The notes beneath the pieces were generated by a model. The model saw nothing but the letters and a program-made list of their open reading frames with translations. It had not been told where the DNA came from and ran no database searches. This document shows positions 11,712 through 24,078 of a DNA stretch of 64,000 bases, piece after piece. Positions within the stretch are counted from its first letter, which is position 1. Every line of letters begins with the position of its first letter. The stretch is from positions 1,612,001 through 1,676,000 of the forward strand of contig OX337234.1 in assembly GCA_946965045.2 (NCBI GenBank), given 5' to 3'. A program made the position numbers and the translations under genes. This DNA comes from Epithemia pelagica (lineage: Eukaryota; Protista; Bacillariophyta).

Positions 11712-14042
11712 ATGTCGCCCCCTTCTGAAACAAACCAGGGGACCAAGAATAGAAAACAAGGAAGCCAACGCTGTGGTGATCCAAAGCAAGATAAAAAGGA
11801 CAACCAAAGCAGTAAGAATTCAGCGCTCCATGGTTTATCTGGTGGCAAAGATGCTGGAGAAAGCAGTACCGATGATGAAACAGACGACGAAGAAATAACG
11901 ATCAGAGATGTCAACAACAAGAATAGCAATGATGACCGTAACCAAGAGGATTCAGGATCCGTATCTGAAAAGAGTCAGGTAATATTTCAGGAAAGAGGAG
12001 GGCGGGGAGCTTCATCCAACGAATCCCAGGACCAAGGTAGTAGTACCATGAGCTGTACAAGAACCCGTGGTGTTACTAATACAGGAGCACCTATGGAATC
12101 CGAACACAATACTGCTGTTATGAATGGAGTCGACCATGGTCAACGAGTTCCTTATAATGCGAATGGAGTTGCTCCATATCTGAATCATACCCATCCTTAT
12201 CCTCACCAGCAACCAAATCCATCGGTGTTGTCATTTCTTCCTCAAGGGCAACAACAACATCAGGTCCATACACAGTTCAATTATTCCCAAGCTCCTGTTG
12301 GGGGGCAACAACATCATCATTTCCCGGCGGCCTCATCATCTACGATTTATCCACAACAAGGAACTGGTATTATGGTGCATCAAGGATACCCACAACAGCA
12401 GATGATGTCTGTCCCATACCCACCCAATGGGGGCGTTCTGATGCAAGGAGGCGCTGGTGTTCACCAACCACAGCAAACACAGATGCACCATATGGATACA
12501 AATAATATTGAGTGCGCAGCTAATGACAATGGTGGTGTGACTGTAATGTCGCACCAAGATGTTGAAAATATTATGGAAGAGGTTATGGGTGGTGGTGGTG
12601 GTGGTGGTGGAGGAGTCAGTCGCGTTTGTAAGTAAGGTGTACTTCCTTTGTTTTGTTTGTGCCCTATCGGTATTGACTGGTTAGAGTGGAACTCTAATCT
12701 GGGTTGATGTGGGTTTGGAAATGTACAATCAAAAAAGATGTGGACTTCTGGATGGATGATGTTTCCTCACTTTCTGATCTCTCTTGGTCGTCATCATCTC
12801 TTGTAGCCATGGAAGTCGGAGGCGATAGCTCAATGGTTGCATCATCTATCTATGGTACTAGTGATGGTCAGAGTTCTGGGGCTAATGCAACGGCTGGTGA
12901 GAGGGAAAGAAGGAGAGAAGACAAGAGGGAAAGAAAGAGAGAACAGCAAAGAAAGAGCAGGAGCAAATACAAGGATCTACCCTTAGCTTGTCGTACGGAT
13001 GAGTTCCAGACTTTTGTGCCTGATGTTGCTTGGAGGTACGTGAAGTATTTCTCACTTGCCGATGATTGTGATGCAGATGATAATGGATTATGGCATTTGG
13101 GGAAGGATCACTTCAAGGCGTATTTCGAACGAGAAAAGATTATTGGTGATGTGGCTAAGGCAAAGTGGTGGGAAAGGTATTCCCCCCATTTGAGGAAAGA
13201 ATTCAGACGCAAGAGATCAAATGTTCTACAATCACTAAGGTTCAGGTTCATGAGTAAGTCGGTACTGTCTTGCTATCTTGTTCTCATTCTTGTGGAAAGT
13301 TTTGCTCTAACATGAGCCTTCCTGCCTGGCAGAACATTTCTCGTTGAATCTATGGAGAACACATGGTGGTGGAATTGTTCAGCGACCATTCCCTAAGTTA
13401 TTGGTTGACGATGAAAATCTAGGTCCTATGCCAAGTCTTGAAGAGATGATGCAAATGAGAGGAGTGAATGGAGACAATGATGCTTATGTTTTCATGTTTG
13501 AAGTATTTGGGGGGTCGGTTTATGGAGATGGAATGGTGAGAGATATCACTAATCAAGATATTACAGCTAATACACCAGAAGCACAAAAGCAAGCAATATG
13601 GAAGGAAGCGATGAGTAAGTTTACTACAAGTGATGAAGCTTTCATTCTCTTGGCTCTTGAAGATTCATGGGATGCATGGGCTCTGAGGAGCAGACAAGAC
13701 TTCAAACAAAAGTTGTACAAAGAAGACCCTGCTTGGTGTCAAGCGCACCAAATTAATGAGGACATTGATACAGATGGAGTAGAACAATACAAGTATTCAG
13801 GTTGTGCACACAAAAAGGGACGTGGTATGAGTGATATTGGCCTTGATCGTCTTGATGAATTACAGCAGAATTTGAGGGATGATCGAGAATATGTATCAGT
13901 TGATGGACTGTTTCAGAGACAAAATGTGTTCATGGAGAATCTTCTTAAGAAACATCGGGAGAGGATGGGATATGTGAACAGTGCTGATCAAGATCAACCG
14001 CAGCAGAAAAAGCGGAGGAAGCACGGACTCTGGTTTTTTTAA
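11712..14042 (+). CDS. Multi-exon hypothetical gene divergent from the Plavaka transposase (probable TE accessory protein; may contain a frameshift)
   Basis: ORFs 11712-12635, 12704-13315 and 13344-14042. Intron 13254-13332 (GTAAGT...CAG) joins the last two in frame (RFM|KHFSLNLW). The first junction needs a putative intron 12615-12684 plus a 1-bp slip in A6 near 12731. Motif TTSDEAFILLALEDSWDAW. Confidence 0.55.
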
Positions 14043-14131
14043 ATAGTATCTCTTCATTAGCTTCTGTGCATGTTTTCACATTCTTCTGTGGATGGTATCG
14101 ATTGTGTTGTGAAATGAGTTACCATAAGTGT

Positions 14132-14323
14132 GTGGCTTCTGCTGGTGCTTTTGGAGCCTGAGATGCAAAAGGTGGGTGGCTTCTGCCGGTGCTTTCGGTG
14201 CCTGAGATGCAAAAGGTGGGTGGCTTCTGCCAGTGCTTTCGGAGCATGGGATGCTAATGGTGTGTGGCTTCCGCTGGTGCTTTCGGAGCATGGGATGCAA
14301 AAGGTGAGTGGCTTCCGCTGGTG
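14132..14323. repeat. 44-bp minisatellite, ~4.4 copies
   Basis: GTGGCTTC starts at 14132, 14176, 14220, 14264 and 14308. Confidence 0.95.
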
Positions 14324-15981
14324 TCATTGGAGAATGGGATAGGAGAGATTGGGGGTTTGCCCTTGTGTTATTGCACCTGTAGAGAGGGTGTATAGATACC
14401 TTGTTCCGATGAGGTTGCTACTTTGTGTTCAGAGTGTTTTGGACGTGGAGGGCAAGGTCAGTGTGCTTAGAAGGTAAGTTCTCTGTGCGTGGAAGATGGG
14501 AGTGTGCGTGCGTGGAAGCTAGGGTCGCCGTGAATGTGTATGATGTTGTATGTGCGTGGTGGTGGGGAGGATTAGTCAAAATGGTGTAAATCCGTATAAA
14601 AAAAACTGGGTACGAAAAATGGCGCATGCCGACGGCGCGTATGGGGTGTGCGTTTTGGGGGCGCGTGACGCTGCCCTTAGACGGAGGCATATGACAAGAT
14701 GATTGAATTCATGAAGACAAAAATGCCACCTCCTCTGTCGTCAGACGACTATGACTTGATACTGGAGGGGTGAGAGTTTAAATTAAAATGGCTAGCTTCG
14801 TCGATTTGCCACTAGAAATACAATTTCTTGCGTGTACGACATCGTATATTCTTGGTTTTCTCTCACATCCTATGTTCAGGCCCGAGCAAATTATCGAACA
14901 TTCTTGCTATTCTCTCACATGCGTTGTTCTGTTTGGAAAAAACAGAACGTATAATCTTAATTATCCCTCACATCTAACATTTGGAGATGTAGGGGGGGGG
15001 GCTCAAAAATGATGTGGGGGGTGGTTTCTGAATCCCATATATCAGACAAAAATTCTTCCGAGCTACGACTACTAGGAGTAACTAACTAGGTAGTCACAGA
15101 AGTACAGACCAGTCATATAACCCCGTGCAGGAGTTGCAGATGGATGGCCAACAGGTGGGAGTATGGAAAGGATTTCTTGTCGCGTCATTAGGGTTAGGTT
15201 GTAAAATTCACACTTCTTGCGCTGCATTGTAGTAGCTGGGTGGCTCACAGTTGGGAGTATGAAAAGGAGTTCTCCAAATGTGATTGGATCTCTCAGTCAC
15301 GACCGAATTATTGTAAATTCTTGATTTTTTCTCGCAGCCGAATTATCGTAGATTCTTGACTTTCCCTCACATTAATTCTTCTTTTGTCGACAGAGATCGC
15401 ATATTTGAATTTTGGAACCGCGCTTTTCCGTAACAGATCTGGAAATTTTGGTCTTGTCGGGTTGTATGTGACAGAAAACCAATAAGCTACGATAAAGTTC
15501 ATGACAAACAAAAATCCATAAATAAGCGGAAAAAGCAACCAAAAAAGAGTGCGCTTGTGTCTAGAGAGTCTAGGTTTTTGCACGCGCGCATTTGTCCACA
15601 AGTTGATGACGTCGTATTCATGACTTGGAGTCGGATCACGGACCGACTTCCAACTACTCCTAAGAATCCTGTTTTCCTACCCACTATGCATTGGAGGGCC
15701 TACCGCCTACAAGCTGGTTTCAGGGATTATACAAGTGACGTAGAATCTACAGGGATTCTTACCAGAGGAGTAATCCTCGATAGCGTTTTGCGTTATTAGT
15801 GTCCGACAAGCGACTTCCTAGTGGCTTAAATAAATATTTTACTATGTGTTTTGTTATGTGTGATTTCTTCCGAACGCTAGAATTTCGTCCAAAAGATTAC
15901 GAAAAAACCGTCCATTGTTGACCATGGTGGAGGGCCGTCCCGACCTGTTCAACTGTTGCCGAGCTGCATCCAGCTCCCTTA

Positions 15982-16025
15982 GGCCGACCCTTAAGCCTCT
16001 ACGAAACGAAAGTTGAGAGCTGACA
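15982..16025 (+). repeat. Left TIR GGCCGACCCTTAAGCCTCTACGAAACGAAAGTTGAGAGCTGACA
   Basis: Reverse complement of 22393-22436 with 2 mismatches (positions 4 and 38). Confidence 0.95.
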
Positions 16026-16581
16026 TTTCGTTTTGGCGGGATTTTGCTTCCTTACCAATAGCAGCATTCTGTGCATATTGTGCGCGCATGGCGAGACCCC
16101 AACGTCCAAGATCCACCAAGATGTCGTATCAGAAACCCCCCACCAACTATGACCCAAACAGTGGCTCATCCTTTGTTAAATATAACCACCAAAATTTCAT
16201 TCCCAACGACCATCCGATTTTGGTTCTAAACTGCCAATGCAATACTCACTAACTTTGTCATCGGCCAACGGTCCAAGACACTATAAATACAACACAATGT
16301 TACGTTTTTGTCCGATGACAAAAGTAGGTAATATTCGTCGAGATACAACGGGTCCAATTGGTACCTTTCACACACAAACGAAATTTTGGGAAAAAAATGC
16401 GAGCACAGCACACCCACTCACACGTGCACACCTCTACAGCATTAATTTATATACATCAATGAATAACATATAACAACCTAATCGCCTTTCAATCGTAGTT
16501 GAGTCATCGGAAGTACGAACTCCAACCGAGAGAAGTCGACGATGAAACAATGAGGACAGCGCCATTTGAGTCGAGTAATAC

Positions 16582-19500
16582 TTGTATTATTACTTATCCT
16601 ATCCTCGTAGAATGCCAAAACAGAAGCCCCCGAAGAACTACGCAAAGAAGAGGCAACCCACCGCTTCCACTGAAGGTTCTCGGAAGTCTCGTCGCCTTCG
16701 AGAAAAAGAGACGGCATCAGATTCCAACGATGGAGGTGCCAAGGATAGCAGGTTCAAGACGGAAGAAGAAATTCTCGCCGAACTGGCAAAACGCGAAGCG
16801 GAGGAAGCCCAGAAGCTCCTTCCATCTCCCAACAAACAGACAAGGACCCGACGCAAAGAATCGAATATCACATGTGAAAAAAACTCTGTTGAGAGAAAGC
16901 AGATTGCCCAGATTGTTCTTGATTTTATGGACGAAGACCATGTCCCCTGCTCTGTTTATGGCAGAGACCGCGAGGAACGCTACCCAGGATACACCTTCTG
17001 TAGCCGATGCAAAAAGGCAGACGACGAGTCTGGTTTCCGTCCTTCTCACAAGATAAACCGCAAGGCAATAGGCGGTCGATACACCTGTAGATCCAAGCAC
17101 ACAAATTTCTGGCATCCCACATACATCGACCCAAAGAAGAAGAACTCTCCAAAACCACCGCCAATTGATTTGTTTTGTCGACCATGCAATGGCGACAAGT
17201 CCCTGAGAACGACTCGCAAACGCAAGAAACGACAGAGGAGGAAAAGATCAAGGATCAAACCTCCACCTCCATCATCCACTCTCGAAAGCATTCTGTACCA
17301 GCATCCACAAGGCAAGGATGAAACTAAGAACCCAACCCAAGGGAATGTTCCTCAAGACGATAACGACCTCATTAGTGAGATTGATGAAGACAAATACAAC
17401 GACGCTGCAAACAAGAAAGAAACTCCACAGTTTCTGTTCAACTTACCTCTTTTCCAGGACCCCCTCAGCCATTACAGCTTTTATGCTCATGATTCTCGAG
17501 ACCATGCAGTCGATGAAACCGAGTCGTTTGATGTCGATAATGAAGAATTAGATGACCTGCCCCCATTCGAAAATGCAGAGAGTCAGCAGTCCAGAGATGA
17601 GCAAGGCGACTCATCAACAACTGAAGAGACAAGAAATAGGACGTACCTTAGTAGTAATGAAACTCTAGATAATGCTGACGAATCTGCCAACATGGATTCG
17701 ACACAAGAAGACAACGAAGAAATCACACGTCTCCACAATCAGATCCATTGTTTGGAACAGGATCTGCTACAAGCACATCAAGCTGTGTCTGACTATCGCA
17801 AGTCCCTGAAGAAAGTAACCGACGATTTGACCGATTGTAGAAGAAAGCTGAAGAATAGATCAGATGACCTTCGGTATTGGAGGGATAAAGACGCGGAAAC
17901 AAAAGCGACGAGCAAAGAGATTGATCTCCCCGCCTCTTGCTACGACATCAAGGACCGTGAAAAACTGGTGTCACATATCCGAGAAATCCTCGTATCAAGG
18001 ACCAGTAGGATGGATGACACGAGTAGAGCAGCAGGAGAATTCTTCCGAGACGTGGCACAACTGTGCCTTGACAAATCCATACACAATGGGCTCATGTTCG
18101 AGAATACATATGGTGTATTTCGTAAATATGTACGCGATTACGTCTTCACACCGTTTAACATTCTACGGAAAATGGATCTCGCAGGTGGCGTCCTAAACCT
18201 TGGCGGCATTGAAGTCCTACGACAAGTGGAAAGCAATGGAGTTGCTAATACACACACACTTATCCCAAGTAGTTCTTGTATCCAGGATGTAGCCAAAGAA
18301 GTCGAGAAGTTTGGGAGTCTTCTCTGCCCCTACCGACTTTTCCGGCACAAGACTGATGGGTCGGAAGGATTTGCCTTCCGGGCAGCCGATGTTATGGCAG
18401 GAATATTAGTGGCAGGCAATTGTCTGTACGGAGACGCTCGTTGGCGGCCCATCCAGTTGGCACAGAGTTTGGACGGCGCTCTTTTCACTAAAAACTTAAG
18501 CCATACACTGGGAGGGCTGAAGTTCAACGACATGTCCAACCCTCTTGCCCAATCACGTAACAGTTGTTTTCCGGTTGTGTGTGTTTGTCGTCCAGAGAGC
18601 AAGGGCTTAGTGCGATCGATCTTTCGGAACATGATCGAAGAGATCCGCGAAGCTGCCGTAAAAGTACTTCCCACGAAATTCGGAGTATGGCCGCTCAAAA
18701 TATGCACTAATTGCGATATGAGTTGCGAGTGGAAGCTACTTGGGCGTGGTGGGGCCGCTCAACAAGTTAACTTCCCTTGTTCGAAATGTACTGTACGAAG
18801 TGGAGAACTCCATCTCCCCACAGGACGTGTCGAAGACTGCAGCCTGTGCTCGCAACTAGGACATTCCAAGAAAACAAACTGGGTATGTAGACATCACAAG
18901 ATGTGTACAAGGGCTCATGTAAACAGTCTACAAAAGGAAGTGGACCACTTCGTCAAGGAGATGCCTAGCATCTACGAGAGTCTAACTGATATATGGGGTG
19001 ATTCCGAGTTGATTATGCAAGAGGACCCCAGGATGGACCCAACCAAAGTTCAGAAGGGGAACATCAAGTCCATCCATTTTGATCTAGGCAAAGCCGATGT
19101 TGCCAAGCGTCTGGAATATGCGAGGTTCATAACCAATGATCTGGTGGTTAGAGAACTAGATGTGCATGGTACACTAGAGCAACGACAACGACGACTCAAG
19201 GCCCACCATGTCAAAGAGTGGATTTACTACCAAGCGAAGAAGGTGTTAGATGATTATAAGCAGTCCAAGACTGCTACCGCAATTGTCTATATGATGGACA
19301 CGGTCCCATGCATTCTCCATATGGAGAATCGCATGGGAATCAAGATTCTTACCATGTGTTTGCGACACGGTCTGGCAAGTGCAAAGGTCAAAGAGTTCGA
19401 TTGGATGCCTGAAGAATATGACAATTCAGAAATAAAGAGATGTAACCACTTCATCAAGCGAGTCCAAAAATGTATGAACCAGTCCATACTGGGAACGAGT

Positions 19501-20770
19501 GATATGCCGACGCAGTGGAAAGCACCGTATGAGAAGAAGAAGCGTAAACTTGGAACTATCACTATGGACAACGTCCGCATCCGAAGAATGTTGCCCAAGT
19601 TTGATGAACTGGTAGATATATGCATCGCAAACCCAGAGAAACAAGTCAAGTGGAAGCAGTGTGTAGCCGACTATGTCATTTCCATGGAACGACTTAACAA
19701 GAAAACCAACATGACAGACAGTGAGATTTTTGACTATCAGCGCAAGGCGGATGAGTTCTTTGCAACTTGGGTGGATTTGTGTGGTGAGAATGGGATAACC
19801 AACTACGCACACTTGATAGGTAGTGGTCACGTAATGGAATACCTGATCCATTGGCGCAACCTGTCATCCCACGCTCAACAGGGGTGGGAAGGTGAGTAGT
19901 AGCCTGCGAAAGCGAAAGAGGTTCTCTTGTTTGTTGAAAATGGCTACTCACCTACACTGTTACAGCATTCAATAGTTTATTTAAGACGTTCTATTTTTCC
20001 AGAACACAAAGGGGTGGTAGTACAAATAGGGGAAAGGGTAGGATGTCCAGACTAGAACCAATGGCGAGATGGTTGCAACGACGCATGGTTTTCATGTGTC
20101 GATACGAATACAGTGATATAACAGAAGGTAATGCAAATTGCAGCGAGGAAAATGCGCTGGCAAGGAAAACCTGGGTTGCAAAGAATAAGGGTACAATGGA
20201 ATTTTGTCGCAGAATTCCGGGTATACAAGACGATGGAGGTGGTCAACAGACAGGGAATGAAAGTGGAGGAGCCGGGCAGTCAAGAGATGAGAGTGGAGGT
20301 GCTGAGCAGTCGACGAATGAGAATGGAGTGCTGAGCAGTCGACGAATGAGAATGGAGGTGCTGAGCAGTCGACGAATGAGAATGGAGATGCCGGACAATC
20401 AACGGAAGTCACTGTTACTGCTGGACAGTCACCAACGGACAATGGAGCTAGCAATGGAGGCGCGGAACAGCCAAGAGAGGAAAACAAATCGGACGAACAA
20501 TCGGTAGAAAAATTGGCGGATATTATAGATCTAGATGACTGGGATTTTTTTGAACCTGGTACATGGACACCAATTGACGATGTAGACCAGATGACACATG
20601 GGACATCACTTGTTGTAGACCCTGAGGAAGATGAGGATAGTGACGATGACGATGACGAGGACTACTACGATGACAGTGACGATGACGAGGAGGACGACGA
20701 CGCGTCTTTGGGTACTATGAATGATGATGATGAAGACGAACTAGTTGCAGAAGATGAGTGTGAAACATAG
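16582..20770 (+). CDS. DDE transposase with a RAG1/Transib/CMC-type core; exons 16582-19891 and 19966-20770, with a 1-bp deletion near 20328 in the acidic tail
   Basis: Motifs SLDGA (D631), NCDMS (D712), CSKC (C733/C736), CILH, ITNYAHLIGSGH (H1077/H1083) and QQGWE (E1103). Intron 19892-19965 (GTGAGT...TACAG) continues the frame as WEAFNSLFKTFYFSRTQRGG...MSRLEP. Confidence 0.8.
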
Positions 20771-20809
20771 GATGATAAGTATCGAATGTAAACTACTGAT
20801 AATGGAATG

Positions 20810-21828
20810 TTAAGCAAACGAAAGGATGTCTTTGAGTAACTCTTCAGCGTCAGTTCGTTGGATAACCAGTGACTCTTTTGGGGATTTACGATTGAACCCC
20901 ACTCCACCAACACATCGACAGTCAAATTTGACATCAGTTTCCTGGCGGGTGATGGAAGAGACTTCCATGACACTTTCTCCCTTGTACATGTACTGATCGC
21001 CAATGTGGATCTTTGACACAGCCTTTGTGTACGAAGGTGGCTTTGAGTTCGTGTCGATAGATGACAGGGAGAAGTCACTTTCACTTGCCGAATCGTTTTG
21101 AGACTGTCCTTGGAGTATCTTTTCCAAATTGGGGCATGGAGGGAGGTGTTTGAGATTGCCATCACGGCTCACGGAATATTGATAACGCTCGTACGATTGG
21201 TAAGACGAACATTATAAGGTGAAAATATGAAATCGACGCGTTGGTCCACAATCCGGCGCTTGAATGGAGGTTCCGATGTTTCGTCGGATTCGTGGGGGTT
21301 GGAATCTTGAGCACCAGCAACAACTGTGAGGTTTTGCTCGCGTCGTAGCACTAGTCCTGTCCTGCCATCGTCGAGTTTAGGACGTCGTTCGGACGATCCG
21401 TACGTCGCACTGGGTCCCAATATCATGCGGAGGACATTCAATTCGGATTGGGTCTTGAAACGAAGAACACCGCCATGGAAAGAAATTTTCACCTGTTGCA
21501 ATGGAAGGAGGATTTAGACAATGGAATGGTGTGAGTGTTGTTATGAGGAATGAAGTGGTTCACATGCATGAGCGTGTATTAGAATTCGTACCTTTGATCG
21601 TGATAGGGAAGAGTCCAAATGAAAGAAGGACTTGGACAGTGAAATGGGGTGAGTATTCAGGGTAATCAATGTGTTGGCGACTTGAGAGATGTACTGAATA
21701 CTCTCCATTGCAACGCAACCAATGTTCAAGGAAACCACTTCTCTGTCAGCTCCCTGTCCTGAGCGTTTGTTGAGTAATTTGTGAATGCTCTTTCTGATTG
21801 TATAGAGGCCATTCCAAATGATTAGCAT
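20810..21828 (-). CDS. Second transposon gene (unknown function, ~300 aa), tail-to-tail with the transposase; one intron and one apparent frameshift
   Basis: Exon 21828-21592, intron 21591-21493 (GTACGA...CAACAG), then VKISFHGGVLRFKTQSELNVLRMILG. A slip near 21200 leads into YERYQYSVSRDGNL...KDILSFA*. The start codon is uncertain. Confidence 0.55.
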
Positions 21829-22392
21829 GCTTGGATGGAATGGATGTTGTGGTTCCGAGCGTGGAAACCGGATACGAATTAGGACAGAAAATGTGACATA
21901 ATATTTAAATACCTTTCGTCCTAGAGAATGTCAGCATGAGAAATAGGTGTTTGGGGTGAGGCAGATACTTAAAAGCGCGAGCCCGTTTTTTGGAGAGCGG
22001 GCAGTGCCAAAGAGGTGGGATTGAGCGTTTTGGCTGAAAATAATATACACAGAATGCTGCTATTGCGCGTCTGCGAAACGAAAACTAGAACCGCGCCTTT
22101 TCCCCCATTCATCCCCCATTCCCCCCCCCCATTTTCACTTCAATAAATTGAATACTAAAATAATTCTCATAGAATTGTGACGTACACAGGACGCACCGAC
22201 CGTTGGAGCTGAACGCCAGTCGATCAATACTCTTGAGCGTTATGAAGAACTTCACATTCATACATTGTCTAAACGCTTTGCACATCTGAAACGCCTTCTA
22301 CTTTCGTTGGCCTACGAAAGTTGGCGCCAACTTTCGTAGCCCCGAAAGCTGAAAAGCAAGAATACCCGGATAAAAGAGGTAAAATGATGACG

Positions 22393-22436
22393 TGTCAGAT
22401 CTCAACTTTCGTTTCGTAGAGGCTTAAGGGTCAGCC
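22393..22436 (-). repeat. Right TIR of the 15982-22436 element
   Basis: TGTCAGATCTCAACTTTCGTTTCGTAGAGGCTTAAGGGTCAGCC followed by TTAGGG. Confidence 0.95.
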
Positions 22437-23275
22437 TTAGGGTGTTGTTGGACCACCACCAATGGGGCAACAGTTCAACGCATCGGCATCATCCACAATA
22501 ACATGATCATCGGACGCACACGCACCCCATCCACGATAGTCTCGTACAAAACGAAGTTTTTCTGGGGGAACGCGAGATTGTCGAGTTTCGGAAGCACTTT
22601 TCACATGAGAGGCATGATTAGAAGGGCTATATTTATAAGATAGCTGGCGTGATTTACGTAGAATTTGTACTGTGAGGTACGTCACTCGCATTTCGTCTGA
22701 AACCAGCTTGTACTCCTACCTTTACCACTCGTTGTCCTACCTTTCCCCACTCACTGAGGACTCACTGAGGAGTAAGTCACTCCCCACAATCACACTACCC
22801 TAGCCCCAAAAATTACTGTACTTAGATGTTTAATTCTAGTGTAGATCGTGGTCGGGTCGCGAGTCGCGAGAGGAGTGGGGGATGGGAGACATTGACTCTA
22901 AGTATTCTGTCACACTATTTATGCAAAAAGCATGCCTCGGAGTTTGATTGGCATGCAATAATTGTGAGATAAATGATACTTCGACATAAAGCGTTTTAAA
23001 TCATCCGATAAAATCGGATGAGGTCACTTAAGTGACGGGGTTATTTGCAAACATTTAAAGATTACCTAGTGCCCCATCGAAAGTAGCAGGGTGACCGTTT
23101 AGACTGTCTAAAATATTTCGGGTCTAAAATAAATCTAAAAGTGCTTTAGACTGTCTAAAATGTCTAAAACAGGGTCTAAAATCTCTCCGTGTTTTTGTAA
23201 GGCGAAGCAATAACCCTATCCCTAGACAGCCAGCTACCTAGGAGCCAGCAACCCTAGACAGCCAGCTAGAGGATT

Positions 23276-24078
23276 GCAAGAAAAGTAGGGACAACATGTG
23301 AGTCGAGTGTGTGAAGTGTGAAGAAGGAAGCAGCAAGAAAAGTGGGGACACATTGCATGAAATAAAAAGCAAGAAAAGTGGGGACAAAACGTGAGCCGAG
23401 TGTATGAAGCAGAGAACAGCAAGATAAGTGGGGACACATTGCATGAAATAAAAAGCAAGAAAAGTGGGGACAAAACGTGAGCCGAGTGTATGAAGCAGAG
23501 AACAGCAAGATAAGTGGGGACACATTGCACGAAATAAAAAGCAAGAAAAGTGGGGACAAAACCTGAGCCGAGTGTATGAAGCAGAGAACAGCAAGATAAG
23601 TGGGGACACATTGCACGAAATAAAAAGCAAGAAAAGTGGGGACAAAACCTGAGCCGAGTGTATGAAGCAGAGAACAGCAAGATAAGTGGGGACACATTGC
23701 ACGAAATAAAAAGCAAGAAAAGTGGGGACAAAACCTGAGCCGAGTGTATGAAGCAGAGAACAGCAAGATAAGTGGGGACACATTGCACGAAATAAAAAGC
23801 AAGAAAAGTGGGGACAAAACCTGAGCCGAGTGTATGAAGCAGAGAACAGCAAGATAAGTGGGGACACATTGCACGAAATAAAAAGCAAGAAAAGTGGGGA
23901 CAAAACCTGAGCCGAGTGTATGAAGCAGAGAACAGCAAGATAAGTGGGGACACATTGCACGAAATAAAAAGCAAGAAAAGTGGGGACAAAACCTGAGCCG
24001 AGTGTATGAAGCAGAGAACAGCAAGATAAGTGGGGACACATTGCACGAAATAAAAAGCAAGAAAAGTGGGGACAAAAA
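23276..24078. repeat. 86-bp tandem array (~9 copies) inside the hAT element
   Basis: GCAAGAAAAGTGGGGACA recurs at 23369, 23455, 23541 ... 24057. The unit consists of two related subunits (50+36 bp). Confidence 0.97.

Follow-up and report, generated by a model that had tools for sequence, protein, structure and literature searches.

In the 64,000-nucleotide stretch of the diatom Epithemia pelagica analysed here (contig OX337234.1, positions 1,612,001 to 1,676,000, hereafter the window), positions 15982 to 22436 hold a transposase gene and a smaller second gene, arranged tail-to-tail between inverted repeats. An initial annotation, made from the sequence alone, took this whole segment as one GG-terminated element of the RAG1/Transib type. 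We consider it probable that the locus is instead a 6.0-kb cut-and-paste transposon of a deeply diverged, uncatalogued lineage of the CMCT clade (CACTA/EnSpm-Mirage-Chapaev-Transib), the group that includes RAG1, lying within a ~445-bp Harbinger/Tourist miniature inverted-repeat transposable element (MITE) that is itself lodged in a repeat. The lineage departs from the clade in its 1-bp target duplication and in its partner gene, which carries a predicted BAH domain. The nested units, with their terminal inverted repeats (TIRs), are the following.

15708..15981 and 22437-22712: left and right arms of a host repeat that surrounds the MITE, partly palindromic and of high depth, from inverted repeats, alignment and contig pile-up; the left arm ends ...CCC beside TTA.
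15979..15981 and 22437-22439: TTA target duplication of the MITE; read contigs show the MITE-free form.
15982..16055: left part of the putative Harbinger/Tourist-type MITE; the first 44 nt, 15982-16025, are its TIR (GGCCGACCC...).
16055: C which, with the C at 22066 on the right, forms the 1-bp target duplication of the transposon.
16056..22065, plus strand: RAG1-fold (CMCT-clade) transposon of 6010 bp, from the inverted repeat, the read-contig join and nine paralogues with homologous ends and gene pair.
16056..16079, plus strand: left TIR CAATAGCAGCATTCTGTGCATATT; its terminal 11 nt, CAATA[GC][CGA]A[GA]CA, are conserved across loci.
16076-16087, plus strand: left-specific subterminal motif TATTGTGCGCGC, which adjoins the left TIR.
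22042..22065, minus strand: right TIR, identical to the left one at 23/24 positions.
22066..22436: right part of the MITE, with its TIR at 22393-22436; its first base, C 22066, is the right copy of the 1-bp duplication.

The outer repeat of the annotated segment is a 44-45-nt inverted repeat (15982-16025 / 22393-22436) with TTA at each outer side. Among the read contigs mapped on 15600-21599, one runs to 16055 and then continues with GCGTCTGCGAAACGAAAACTAG, which is window sequence from 22067 onward. This contig is the GGCC-ended unit minus 6010 bp, and the edges of the gap are exactly the inner 24-nt inverted repeat (16056-16079 / 22042-22065), whose two copies begin CAATAGCAGCA. Because this contig holds the MITE without the insert, and because the paralogues share only the inner CAATA ends, the GGCC ends belong to a separate MITE. 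Similarity to the outer repeat was found in none of the 11 paralogous loci of the same assembly, and the outer GGCC ends attract many more read contigs than the body of the element, a qualitative comparison since summed read-contig depth was not equated with copy number. The ends of the transposon are thus 5'-CAATA...TATTG-3', of the CA..TG type usual for the clade, and both the GG termini and the different end chemistry that the initial annotation had attributed to it must be given up.

Without its insert the MITE measures ~445 bp (74 + 371 bp), and its TIRs are GGCCGACCC / GGCTGACCC. The insertion site without the MITE is present in the read contigs as CCCTTAGGGTGTT (CCCTTAGGG), within a paralogous copy of the larger repeat, and a loose end at 15983 that runs into the letters of the right flank with 1 mismatch corresponds to a copy of the outer repeat without the MITE. 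GGCC ends together with a TTA duplication are a signature of PIF/Harbinger elements. By these two features the outer unit fits a Harbinger/Tourist-type MITE, and it resembles the PIF/Harbinger-derived Tourist-like MITEs in its 3-bp TTA (TWA) duplication, its GG(C/G)C-type termini, its size of ~445 bp, its lack of coding capacity and its many copies. No autonomous Harbinger partner for it was identified, and no DDE_Tnp_4 transposase or Myb-like gene was found inside it, as expected for a non-autonomous element. The MITE insertion site, CCC-TTA-GGG, lies in the middle of a partly palindromic repeat of very high depth with arms TACAAGCTGGTTTCAG... and GTTCAACTGTTGCC, which makes three levels of nesting. 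We also observed that read contigs of the element body begin their alignment exactly at 16056 and that, in two of them, the preceding 30-39 letters are unlike the window MITE; these contigs may come from a second, 99.6%-identical copy elsewhere.

The same gene pair is enclosed by CAATA[GC][CGA]A[GA]CA on the left and its complement on the right in nine paralogues (L001, L003-L007 and L009-L011), which are 5.9-6.4 kb long and whose proteins share 39-67% identity. The TIRs of the lineage are 18-24 nt long, of the form 5'-CAATA[GC][CG]AGCA...TATTG-3', and CAATA...TATTG delimits the element in 10 loci, counting the window copy. A search of the paralogues for TIRs that was based on a 3-bp duplication gave nothing convincing, and this failure is what exposed the inner CAATA ends. 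The single bases that flank these ends, left/right, are listed below.

Window: C / C
L001: A / A
L003: T / T
L004: C / C
L006: G / G
L007: T / T
L009: C / C
L010: G / G
L011: A / A
L005 (decayed copy): A / T

Left and right bases agree in 9 of the 10 loci, and in none of these nine does the match extend to 2 bp. Nine or more agreements would arise by chance with a probability of ~3e-5 if p=0.25, and of <4e-4 if p is conservatively set to 1/3. As all four bases are represented and the two flanks are identical rather than complementary, these bases derive from the target and lie outside the TIR. The flanking bases indicate that insertion of the transposon duplicates one target base, and the empty site found in the read contigs, CCTTA-C-GCGTCTG, has one C only. 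Target duplications of 2-5 bp have been reported for the CMCT clade (PMC12730594), which places a 1-bp duplication outside the reported range, and no open-access paper was found with the phrases '1-bp TSD', '1 bp TSD' or '1-bp target site' (TSD, target-site duplication).

The two ends of the element differ in their subterminal sequences. A left-end-specific motif, TAT(A/T)GTGCGCGC, occurs ~20-32 nt from the end in the window, L001, L002, L003, L004, L006 and L009, while the right ends carry T-rich...CAAAA(G/C) motifs instead. Because these motifs differ between left and right, the ends are likely to be functionally asymmetric, acting as promoters or through differential binding of the transposase, and TAT(A/T)GTGCGCGC and the T-rich...CAAAA motifs would be the sequences with such promoter or binding roles.

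Nesting is not restricted to the window. In L006 the CAATA element lies within a different TIR element (L006:4026-11154) with perfect 30-nt ends, CTACTCCCTCCGG... (CTACTCCCTCCGGCC...), which are reminiscent of Stowaway-type ends. Since this outer element differs from the window MITE, nesting is recurrent and the outer ends are interchangeable; that 2 of 10 copies lie within other TIR elements may hint at a target preference for such elements. Two other observations concern the paralogous loci. L002 has two left ends in the same orientation (3933 and 10248) and, downstream, a second transposase fragment (12417-12874), which suggests tandem or nested copies. Just upstream of the elements in L003 and L007, on the opposite strand, there are ORFs of 1082 and 1086 aa (L003:2241-5489 and L007:101-3361, both on the minus strand; ORF, open reading frame) without Pfam match, which may encode another unannotated mobile-element protein.

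The first gene of the transposon was visible as a 1105-aa ORF on the plus strand (16582-19899), with smaller minus-strand ORFs downstream. Its parts are these.

16612..19891, plus strand: transposase exon 1, with ATG at 16612; N-terminal Cys/His domain, coiled coil and RAG1-like core up to the catalytic E codon.
18472-18474 (D631), 18715-18717 (D712), 18778-18789 (C733/C736), 19810-19830 (H1077/H1083) and 19888-19890 (E), plus strand: key codons of exon 1.
19892..19965, plus strand: 74-nt GT..AG intron right after the catalytic Glu codon, from homologues.
19966..20770, plus strand: transposase exon 2; AFNSLFK..., a basic stretch, the 30-nt repeats at 20255-20391 and the acidic tail.

The ORF ends two codons past the Glu codon, at a GTGAGT donor, and splicing joins it to AFNSLFKTFYFSRTQRGG.... 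The WEAFNSLFK splice proposed in the initial annotation is confirmed, because 17 intron-less homologues read straight through this point as GWEAFNS.FK..YF.RT.RGG and in 13 paralogues the intron interrupts the ORF at the codon where that of the window stops. The N-terminal Cys/His domain, the coiled coil, the extra Cys/His cluster and the acidic tail described there are present as well, with the tail out of frame in the window: one G is missing after 20327, the read contigs carry it, and the spliced product is then 1361 aa long. The tail contains a 30-nt repeat (x4.6, 20255-20391) that encodes GGAEQSTNEN units, and the missing G could stem from an indel made in assembly, or near-identical copies could truly differ at this point.

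The residues of interest are D631, D712, CSKC (733/736), CSLC...CRH (753/756/769/771), PCILH (910/913), ITNYAHLIGSGH (1077/1083) and E1103. D631, D712, the C(2)C pair, the second C(2)C...C.H, C..H, TNY.H.....H and QQGWE are invariant or more than 90% conserved in 31 and in 47 homologues, and the catalytic and zinc-binding candidates named at first stand at the positions given for them; C733-x2-C736, 21 residues past D712, is invariant in the 47 diverse members. The His pair has the form H(5)H. From its last His to the Glu the spacing is 20, a value shared with RAG1. The RAG1 peptide quoted for comparison is exact in mouse RAG1 932-969, and a single BLASTP comparison (E 0.021) aligns RAG1 H937, H942, E962 and N965 to H, H, E and N of the family, with a one-residue gap in the His pair. 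C733, C736, H1077 and H1083 are invariant, match the zinc ligands of RAG1 in pattern and lie in equivalent segments.

A word-indexed search retrieved 39 relatives, all unannotated and without Pfam domain, from one ENA assembly and from JGI and Logan metagenomes; the exhaustive profile search gave 3834 representative clusters at E<=0.001, 604 of them at E<=1e-30. The divergent member P0134, used as query, retrieved only itself. None of 78 members matched any transposase family of Pfam at E<=1, including the RAG1 families and Transposase_21 (PF02992), and only coiled-coil noise was obtained for them and for 5 ORFs of the window. For the N-terminal Cys/His region, ESM Atlas features reached <=0.81 and there was no match in the PDB.

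The fold was examined in a model of the core of the intron-less member P0011 (residues 288-1060, 48% identical to the window core), built with AlphaFold2 from a 31-sequence alignment (pLDDT 84.8, pTM 0.78; model confidence scores). The top 49 PDB matches in Foldseek are all RAG1, amphioxus BbRAGL or HzTransib (E down to 7e-11, 660-814 columns), and the 50th is the P element (E 0.067). VIA-align gave Z values of 17-18 for RAG1 and for HzTransib 6pqx, with 410-534 aligned residues (410 residues at 4.2 A for 6pqx), and 16.7 for BbRAGL, versus 9.3 for the P element, ~6 for ISCth4 and 5.6 for Hermes, and a Foldseek-free search of 48,161 representative chains returned the same ranking. The alignments cover model residues 82-721 and RAG1 459-1008, and several reach the NBD region (model 8-721 versus RAG1 388-1005). 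Within the RNase H fold of the model, one D lies on beta-1 and the other just past beta-4, and a helix starts at the E; language-model features score 0.94 to RAG1 clusters. By this model, the transposase has the predicted RAG1/Transib multi-domain fold over its whole core. As the PDB holds no CMC transposase (En/Spm-CACTA, Mirage, Chapaev), the ESM Atlas was used for that comparison: plant En/Spm (PF02992) clusters align with TM 0.51-0.52 over 485-498 residues, RAG1/Transib-like ones with TM 0.47-0.48, and unnamed rotifer and Mucoromycota clusters with TM 0.53-0.56. Because the values for En/Spm and for RAG1/Transib-like clusters are alike, the fold does not separate Transib from CMC, in line with PMC12730594.

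The second gene, of ~410-575 aa, is found tail-to-tail with the transposase in 12 of 12 examined loci, and its products share 32-57% identity among the eight loci compared. Pfam gave no match for it and an Atlas fold search with the whole model of the L001 product gave no informative one, only the BAH part being assignable. The model is mediocre overall (pLDDT 64.7) and confident over N-terminal residues ~18-190, for which the top 50 structural matches are all BAH domains (ORC1, polybromo, DNMT1/MET1, SHL/EBS, Sir3) with Z 8.0-8.6 over 113-148 residues; Atlas features point weakly to BAH (0.85). The model thus describes gene 2 as a ~500-aa protein with a predicted N-terminal BAH fold. No Kelch propeller is found in it, and it is not RAG2-like in fold. 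In the window this gene is composed as follows.

20810..21492, minus strand: downstream exon, identified by tblastn with the partner gene of L001 (E 3e-74); a frameshift at 21197 is not in the read contigs.
21493..21591, minus strand: 99-nt GT..AG intron with in-frame stops inside, from homology; its removal restores LSRSKVKISFHGGVLRF, which matches the family consensus.
21592..21828, minus strand: upstream exon from the first ATG; 237 nt from the ATG to the element end.

The window gene matches only residues 194-499 of the L001 protein, and the ~190-aa BAH domain is absent: once the frameshift and the intron are resolved, its product is 306 aa long. The two-gene element of the initial annotation therefore holds insofar as the second gene is real and conserved, but in the window copy this gene is truncated. 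The assembled copy carries two frameshifts that are missing from read contigs of this organism with 99.6% identity to it, and with these and a gene 2 that lacks the BAH domain the window copy probably depends on partners.

When compared to RAG1, ProtoRAG RAG1L and Transib (4wwx, 6cg0, 6dbo, 6b40, 6pqx), the diatom family has the same predicted order of DDBD, pre-RNase H, RNase H, ZnC2, ZnH2 and C-terminal domains, the same placement of D-D-E, a C(2)C pair, paired His ahead of the Glu and an E..N.LF[KR] motif. It differs from them in having no detectable sequence similarity, CAATAGC ends instead of a CAC heptamer with 12/23 spacers, a 1-bp instead of a 5-bp duplication and H(5)H instead of H(4)H; one more Cys/His cluster is present, and the helical insertion is much larger. 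As in ProtoRAG, a convergent partner gene lies within the TIRs, with a predicted BAH domain in place of the Kelch propeller of ProtoRAG and of the Kelch-PHD architecture of RAG2. With the CMC group it shares the fold in the Atlas comparison, CA..TG termini and short duplications, and multi-gene elements are common in CMC while an N-terminal zinc domain occurs in Chapaev; however, the Transposase_21 signature is absent, so the likeness is at the level of the fold, the third terminal base is A and not C, the duplication is 1 bp versus 2-4 bp, and a BAH partner is unknown as a CMC accessory. The published definition of CMCT combines the C(2)C and H(3-4)H motifs with CA..TG termini and duplications of 2-5 bp (PMC12730594), and we find a DDE triad on an RNase H-like core, C(2)C and CA..TG ends here, but not the 2-5-bp duplication. 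Comparable in kind are ESTA, Plavaka and Lanisha, deep CMCT lineages known only through HHpred or structural likeness to RAG1/EnSpm together with C(2)C / H..H, each with its own duplication length and passenger genes (PMC12730594). ESTA has TA duplications and TET/JBP genes, and in fungi genes of the TET/JBP type are carried by DNA transposons, those of the CMCT clade among them (PMC12730594). These three lineages come from rust fungi, mushrooms and a moss, and the diatom family, compared with them by description only, is set apart by those descriptions; new here means having no Pfam family. The uncatalogued lineage of the RAG1/Transib/CMC clade that was first proposed thus survives in its fold, its D-D-E and its lack of a Pfam family.

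By analogy to RAG, Transib and hAT, the transposase would bind the CAATA ends as a dimer, nick at the element boundary and set the element free by hairpin formation on the flanking DNA, and the 3'-OH ends would then be inserted with a 1-nt stagger. Catalysis would be of the DDE type with D631, D712 and E1103. The BAH protein could be a chromatin-reading accessory factor, that is, a functional analogue of the PHD finger of RAG2 without homology to RAG2.

Other explanations have to be considered. To read the whole of 15982-22436 as one element, in which the RAG1-like transposase would use the GGCC...GGCC repeats and make TTA duplications, has in its favour that the 44-nt repeat is near-perfect, flanked by TTA and encloses both genes; we give it hardly any credence, as contigs hold the GGCC unit without the 6010-bp insert and joined exactly at the inner inverted repeat, the outer ends draw far more contigs than the body, GGCC ends occur in 0 of 11 paralogous loci as against nine with CAATA ends, GGCC plus TTA is the mark of PIF/Harbinger, and the L006 copy is nested likewise in an unrelated TIR element. 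Domesticated host genes like RAG1/RAG2, no longer mobile, would also account for many diverged intact paralogues in one genome, each apparently of low copy number, for introns gained in a subclade and for the lack of a clear TIR in L008. This is nevertheless very improbable: matched TIRs with target duplication are retained in ten loci, at different places in the genome; the MITE broken up by the window copy also exists intact in the reads; and L005, the fragment in L002 and window gene 2 without BAH are examples of decayed or truncated copies.

A closer rival, which we regard as unlikely, is that the family is an ordinary member of a CMCT lineage already named in Repbase (ESTA, Chapaev, EnSpm, Lanisha or a Transib subgroup). 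HHpred also links the transposases of ESTA to RAG1, and the diversity among CMCT lineages is great (PMC12730594); a 2026 preprint reports that duplication length (2-5 bp) and terminal bases vary even between close Transib relatives, and the CMC models of the Atlas are as close in fold as RAG1. Against this, none of the 78 members has a Pfam RAG1 or Transposase_21 match, the close homologues are all nameless sequences in unannotated data of ENA, JGI or Logan, the reported duplications of the clade start at 2 bp and the 1-bp phrasing was not found in open-access papers, and the Lanisha elements were described in a moss, those of ESTA, with their TA duplications, in rust fungi.

Several points weigh against the uncatalogued, nested CMCT transposon that we prefer. 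A single sequence and three profiles searched against the PDB gave no match to RAG1/Transib or any other transposase (for the profiles, none at E<=10), and because the sequences gave no link to RAG1, Transib or CMC, the placement of the family relies on predicted structure and short motifs. The zinc site is proposed from the residue pattern, from which we infer the clustering of the Cys and His residues, and the His spacing, H(5)H, falls outside the H(3-4)H of the clade. The BAH assignment has a modest Z and comes from the mediocre gene 2 model. The 1-bp duplication is based on 10 loci of one assembly and one empty-site contig, which may be a paralogous copy of the MITE and not the allele; a recognisable TIR is absent in L008, as is the right end in L002. 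Finally, no RNA run with the element was found, and both introns are supported by homology only.

Outside the nested elements, the window contains two tandem repeats: an 86-bp repeat with 8.8 copies, 99% identical, lies just to their right (23319-24077) and gives long spurious minus-strand ORFs, and a 44-bp repeat with 4.8 copies and 87% matches lies at 14128-14340.

For annotators, this locus illustrates that a nested insertion in a TTA-targeting MITE can yield convincing but false 'TIR + TSD' boundaries. The relatives of RAG1 serve as the model for the change of a transposase into an enzyme of vertebrate immunity, and the group is thinly sampled beyond animals, plants and fungi. The family would extend the full RAG1 core architecture to diatoms and to a large unannotated pool of sequences (the 3834 representative clusters of the profile search), and the single-base duplications imply that the target stagger in a RAG1-type fold can shrink to one base. 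It also provides a second, independent case of a RAG1-fold enzyme and a putative chromatin-reader protein encoded tail-to-tail, by which the idea of selection for such partnerships in this clade becomes directly testable. More tentatively, and with more doubt than confidence, the family could be an unnamed branch of RAG1/Transib/CMC at the level of a superfamily, widely spread among marine protists (thousands of clusters), with a 1-nt stagger and a BAH partner that steers or licenses transposition by reading chromatin. If this were true, the partnership of RAG1 with a chromatin-reading RAG2 would have evolved independently here.

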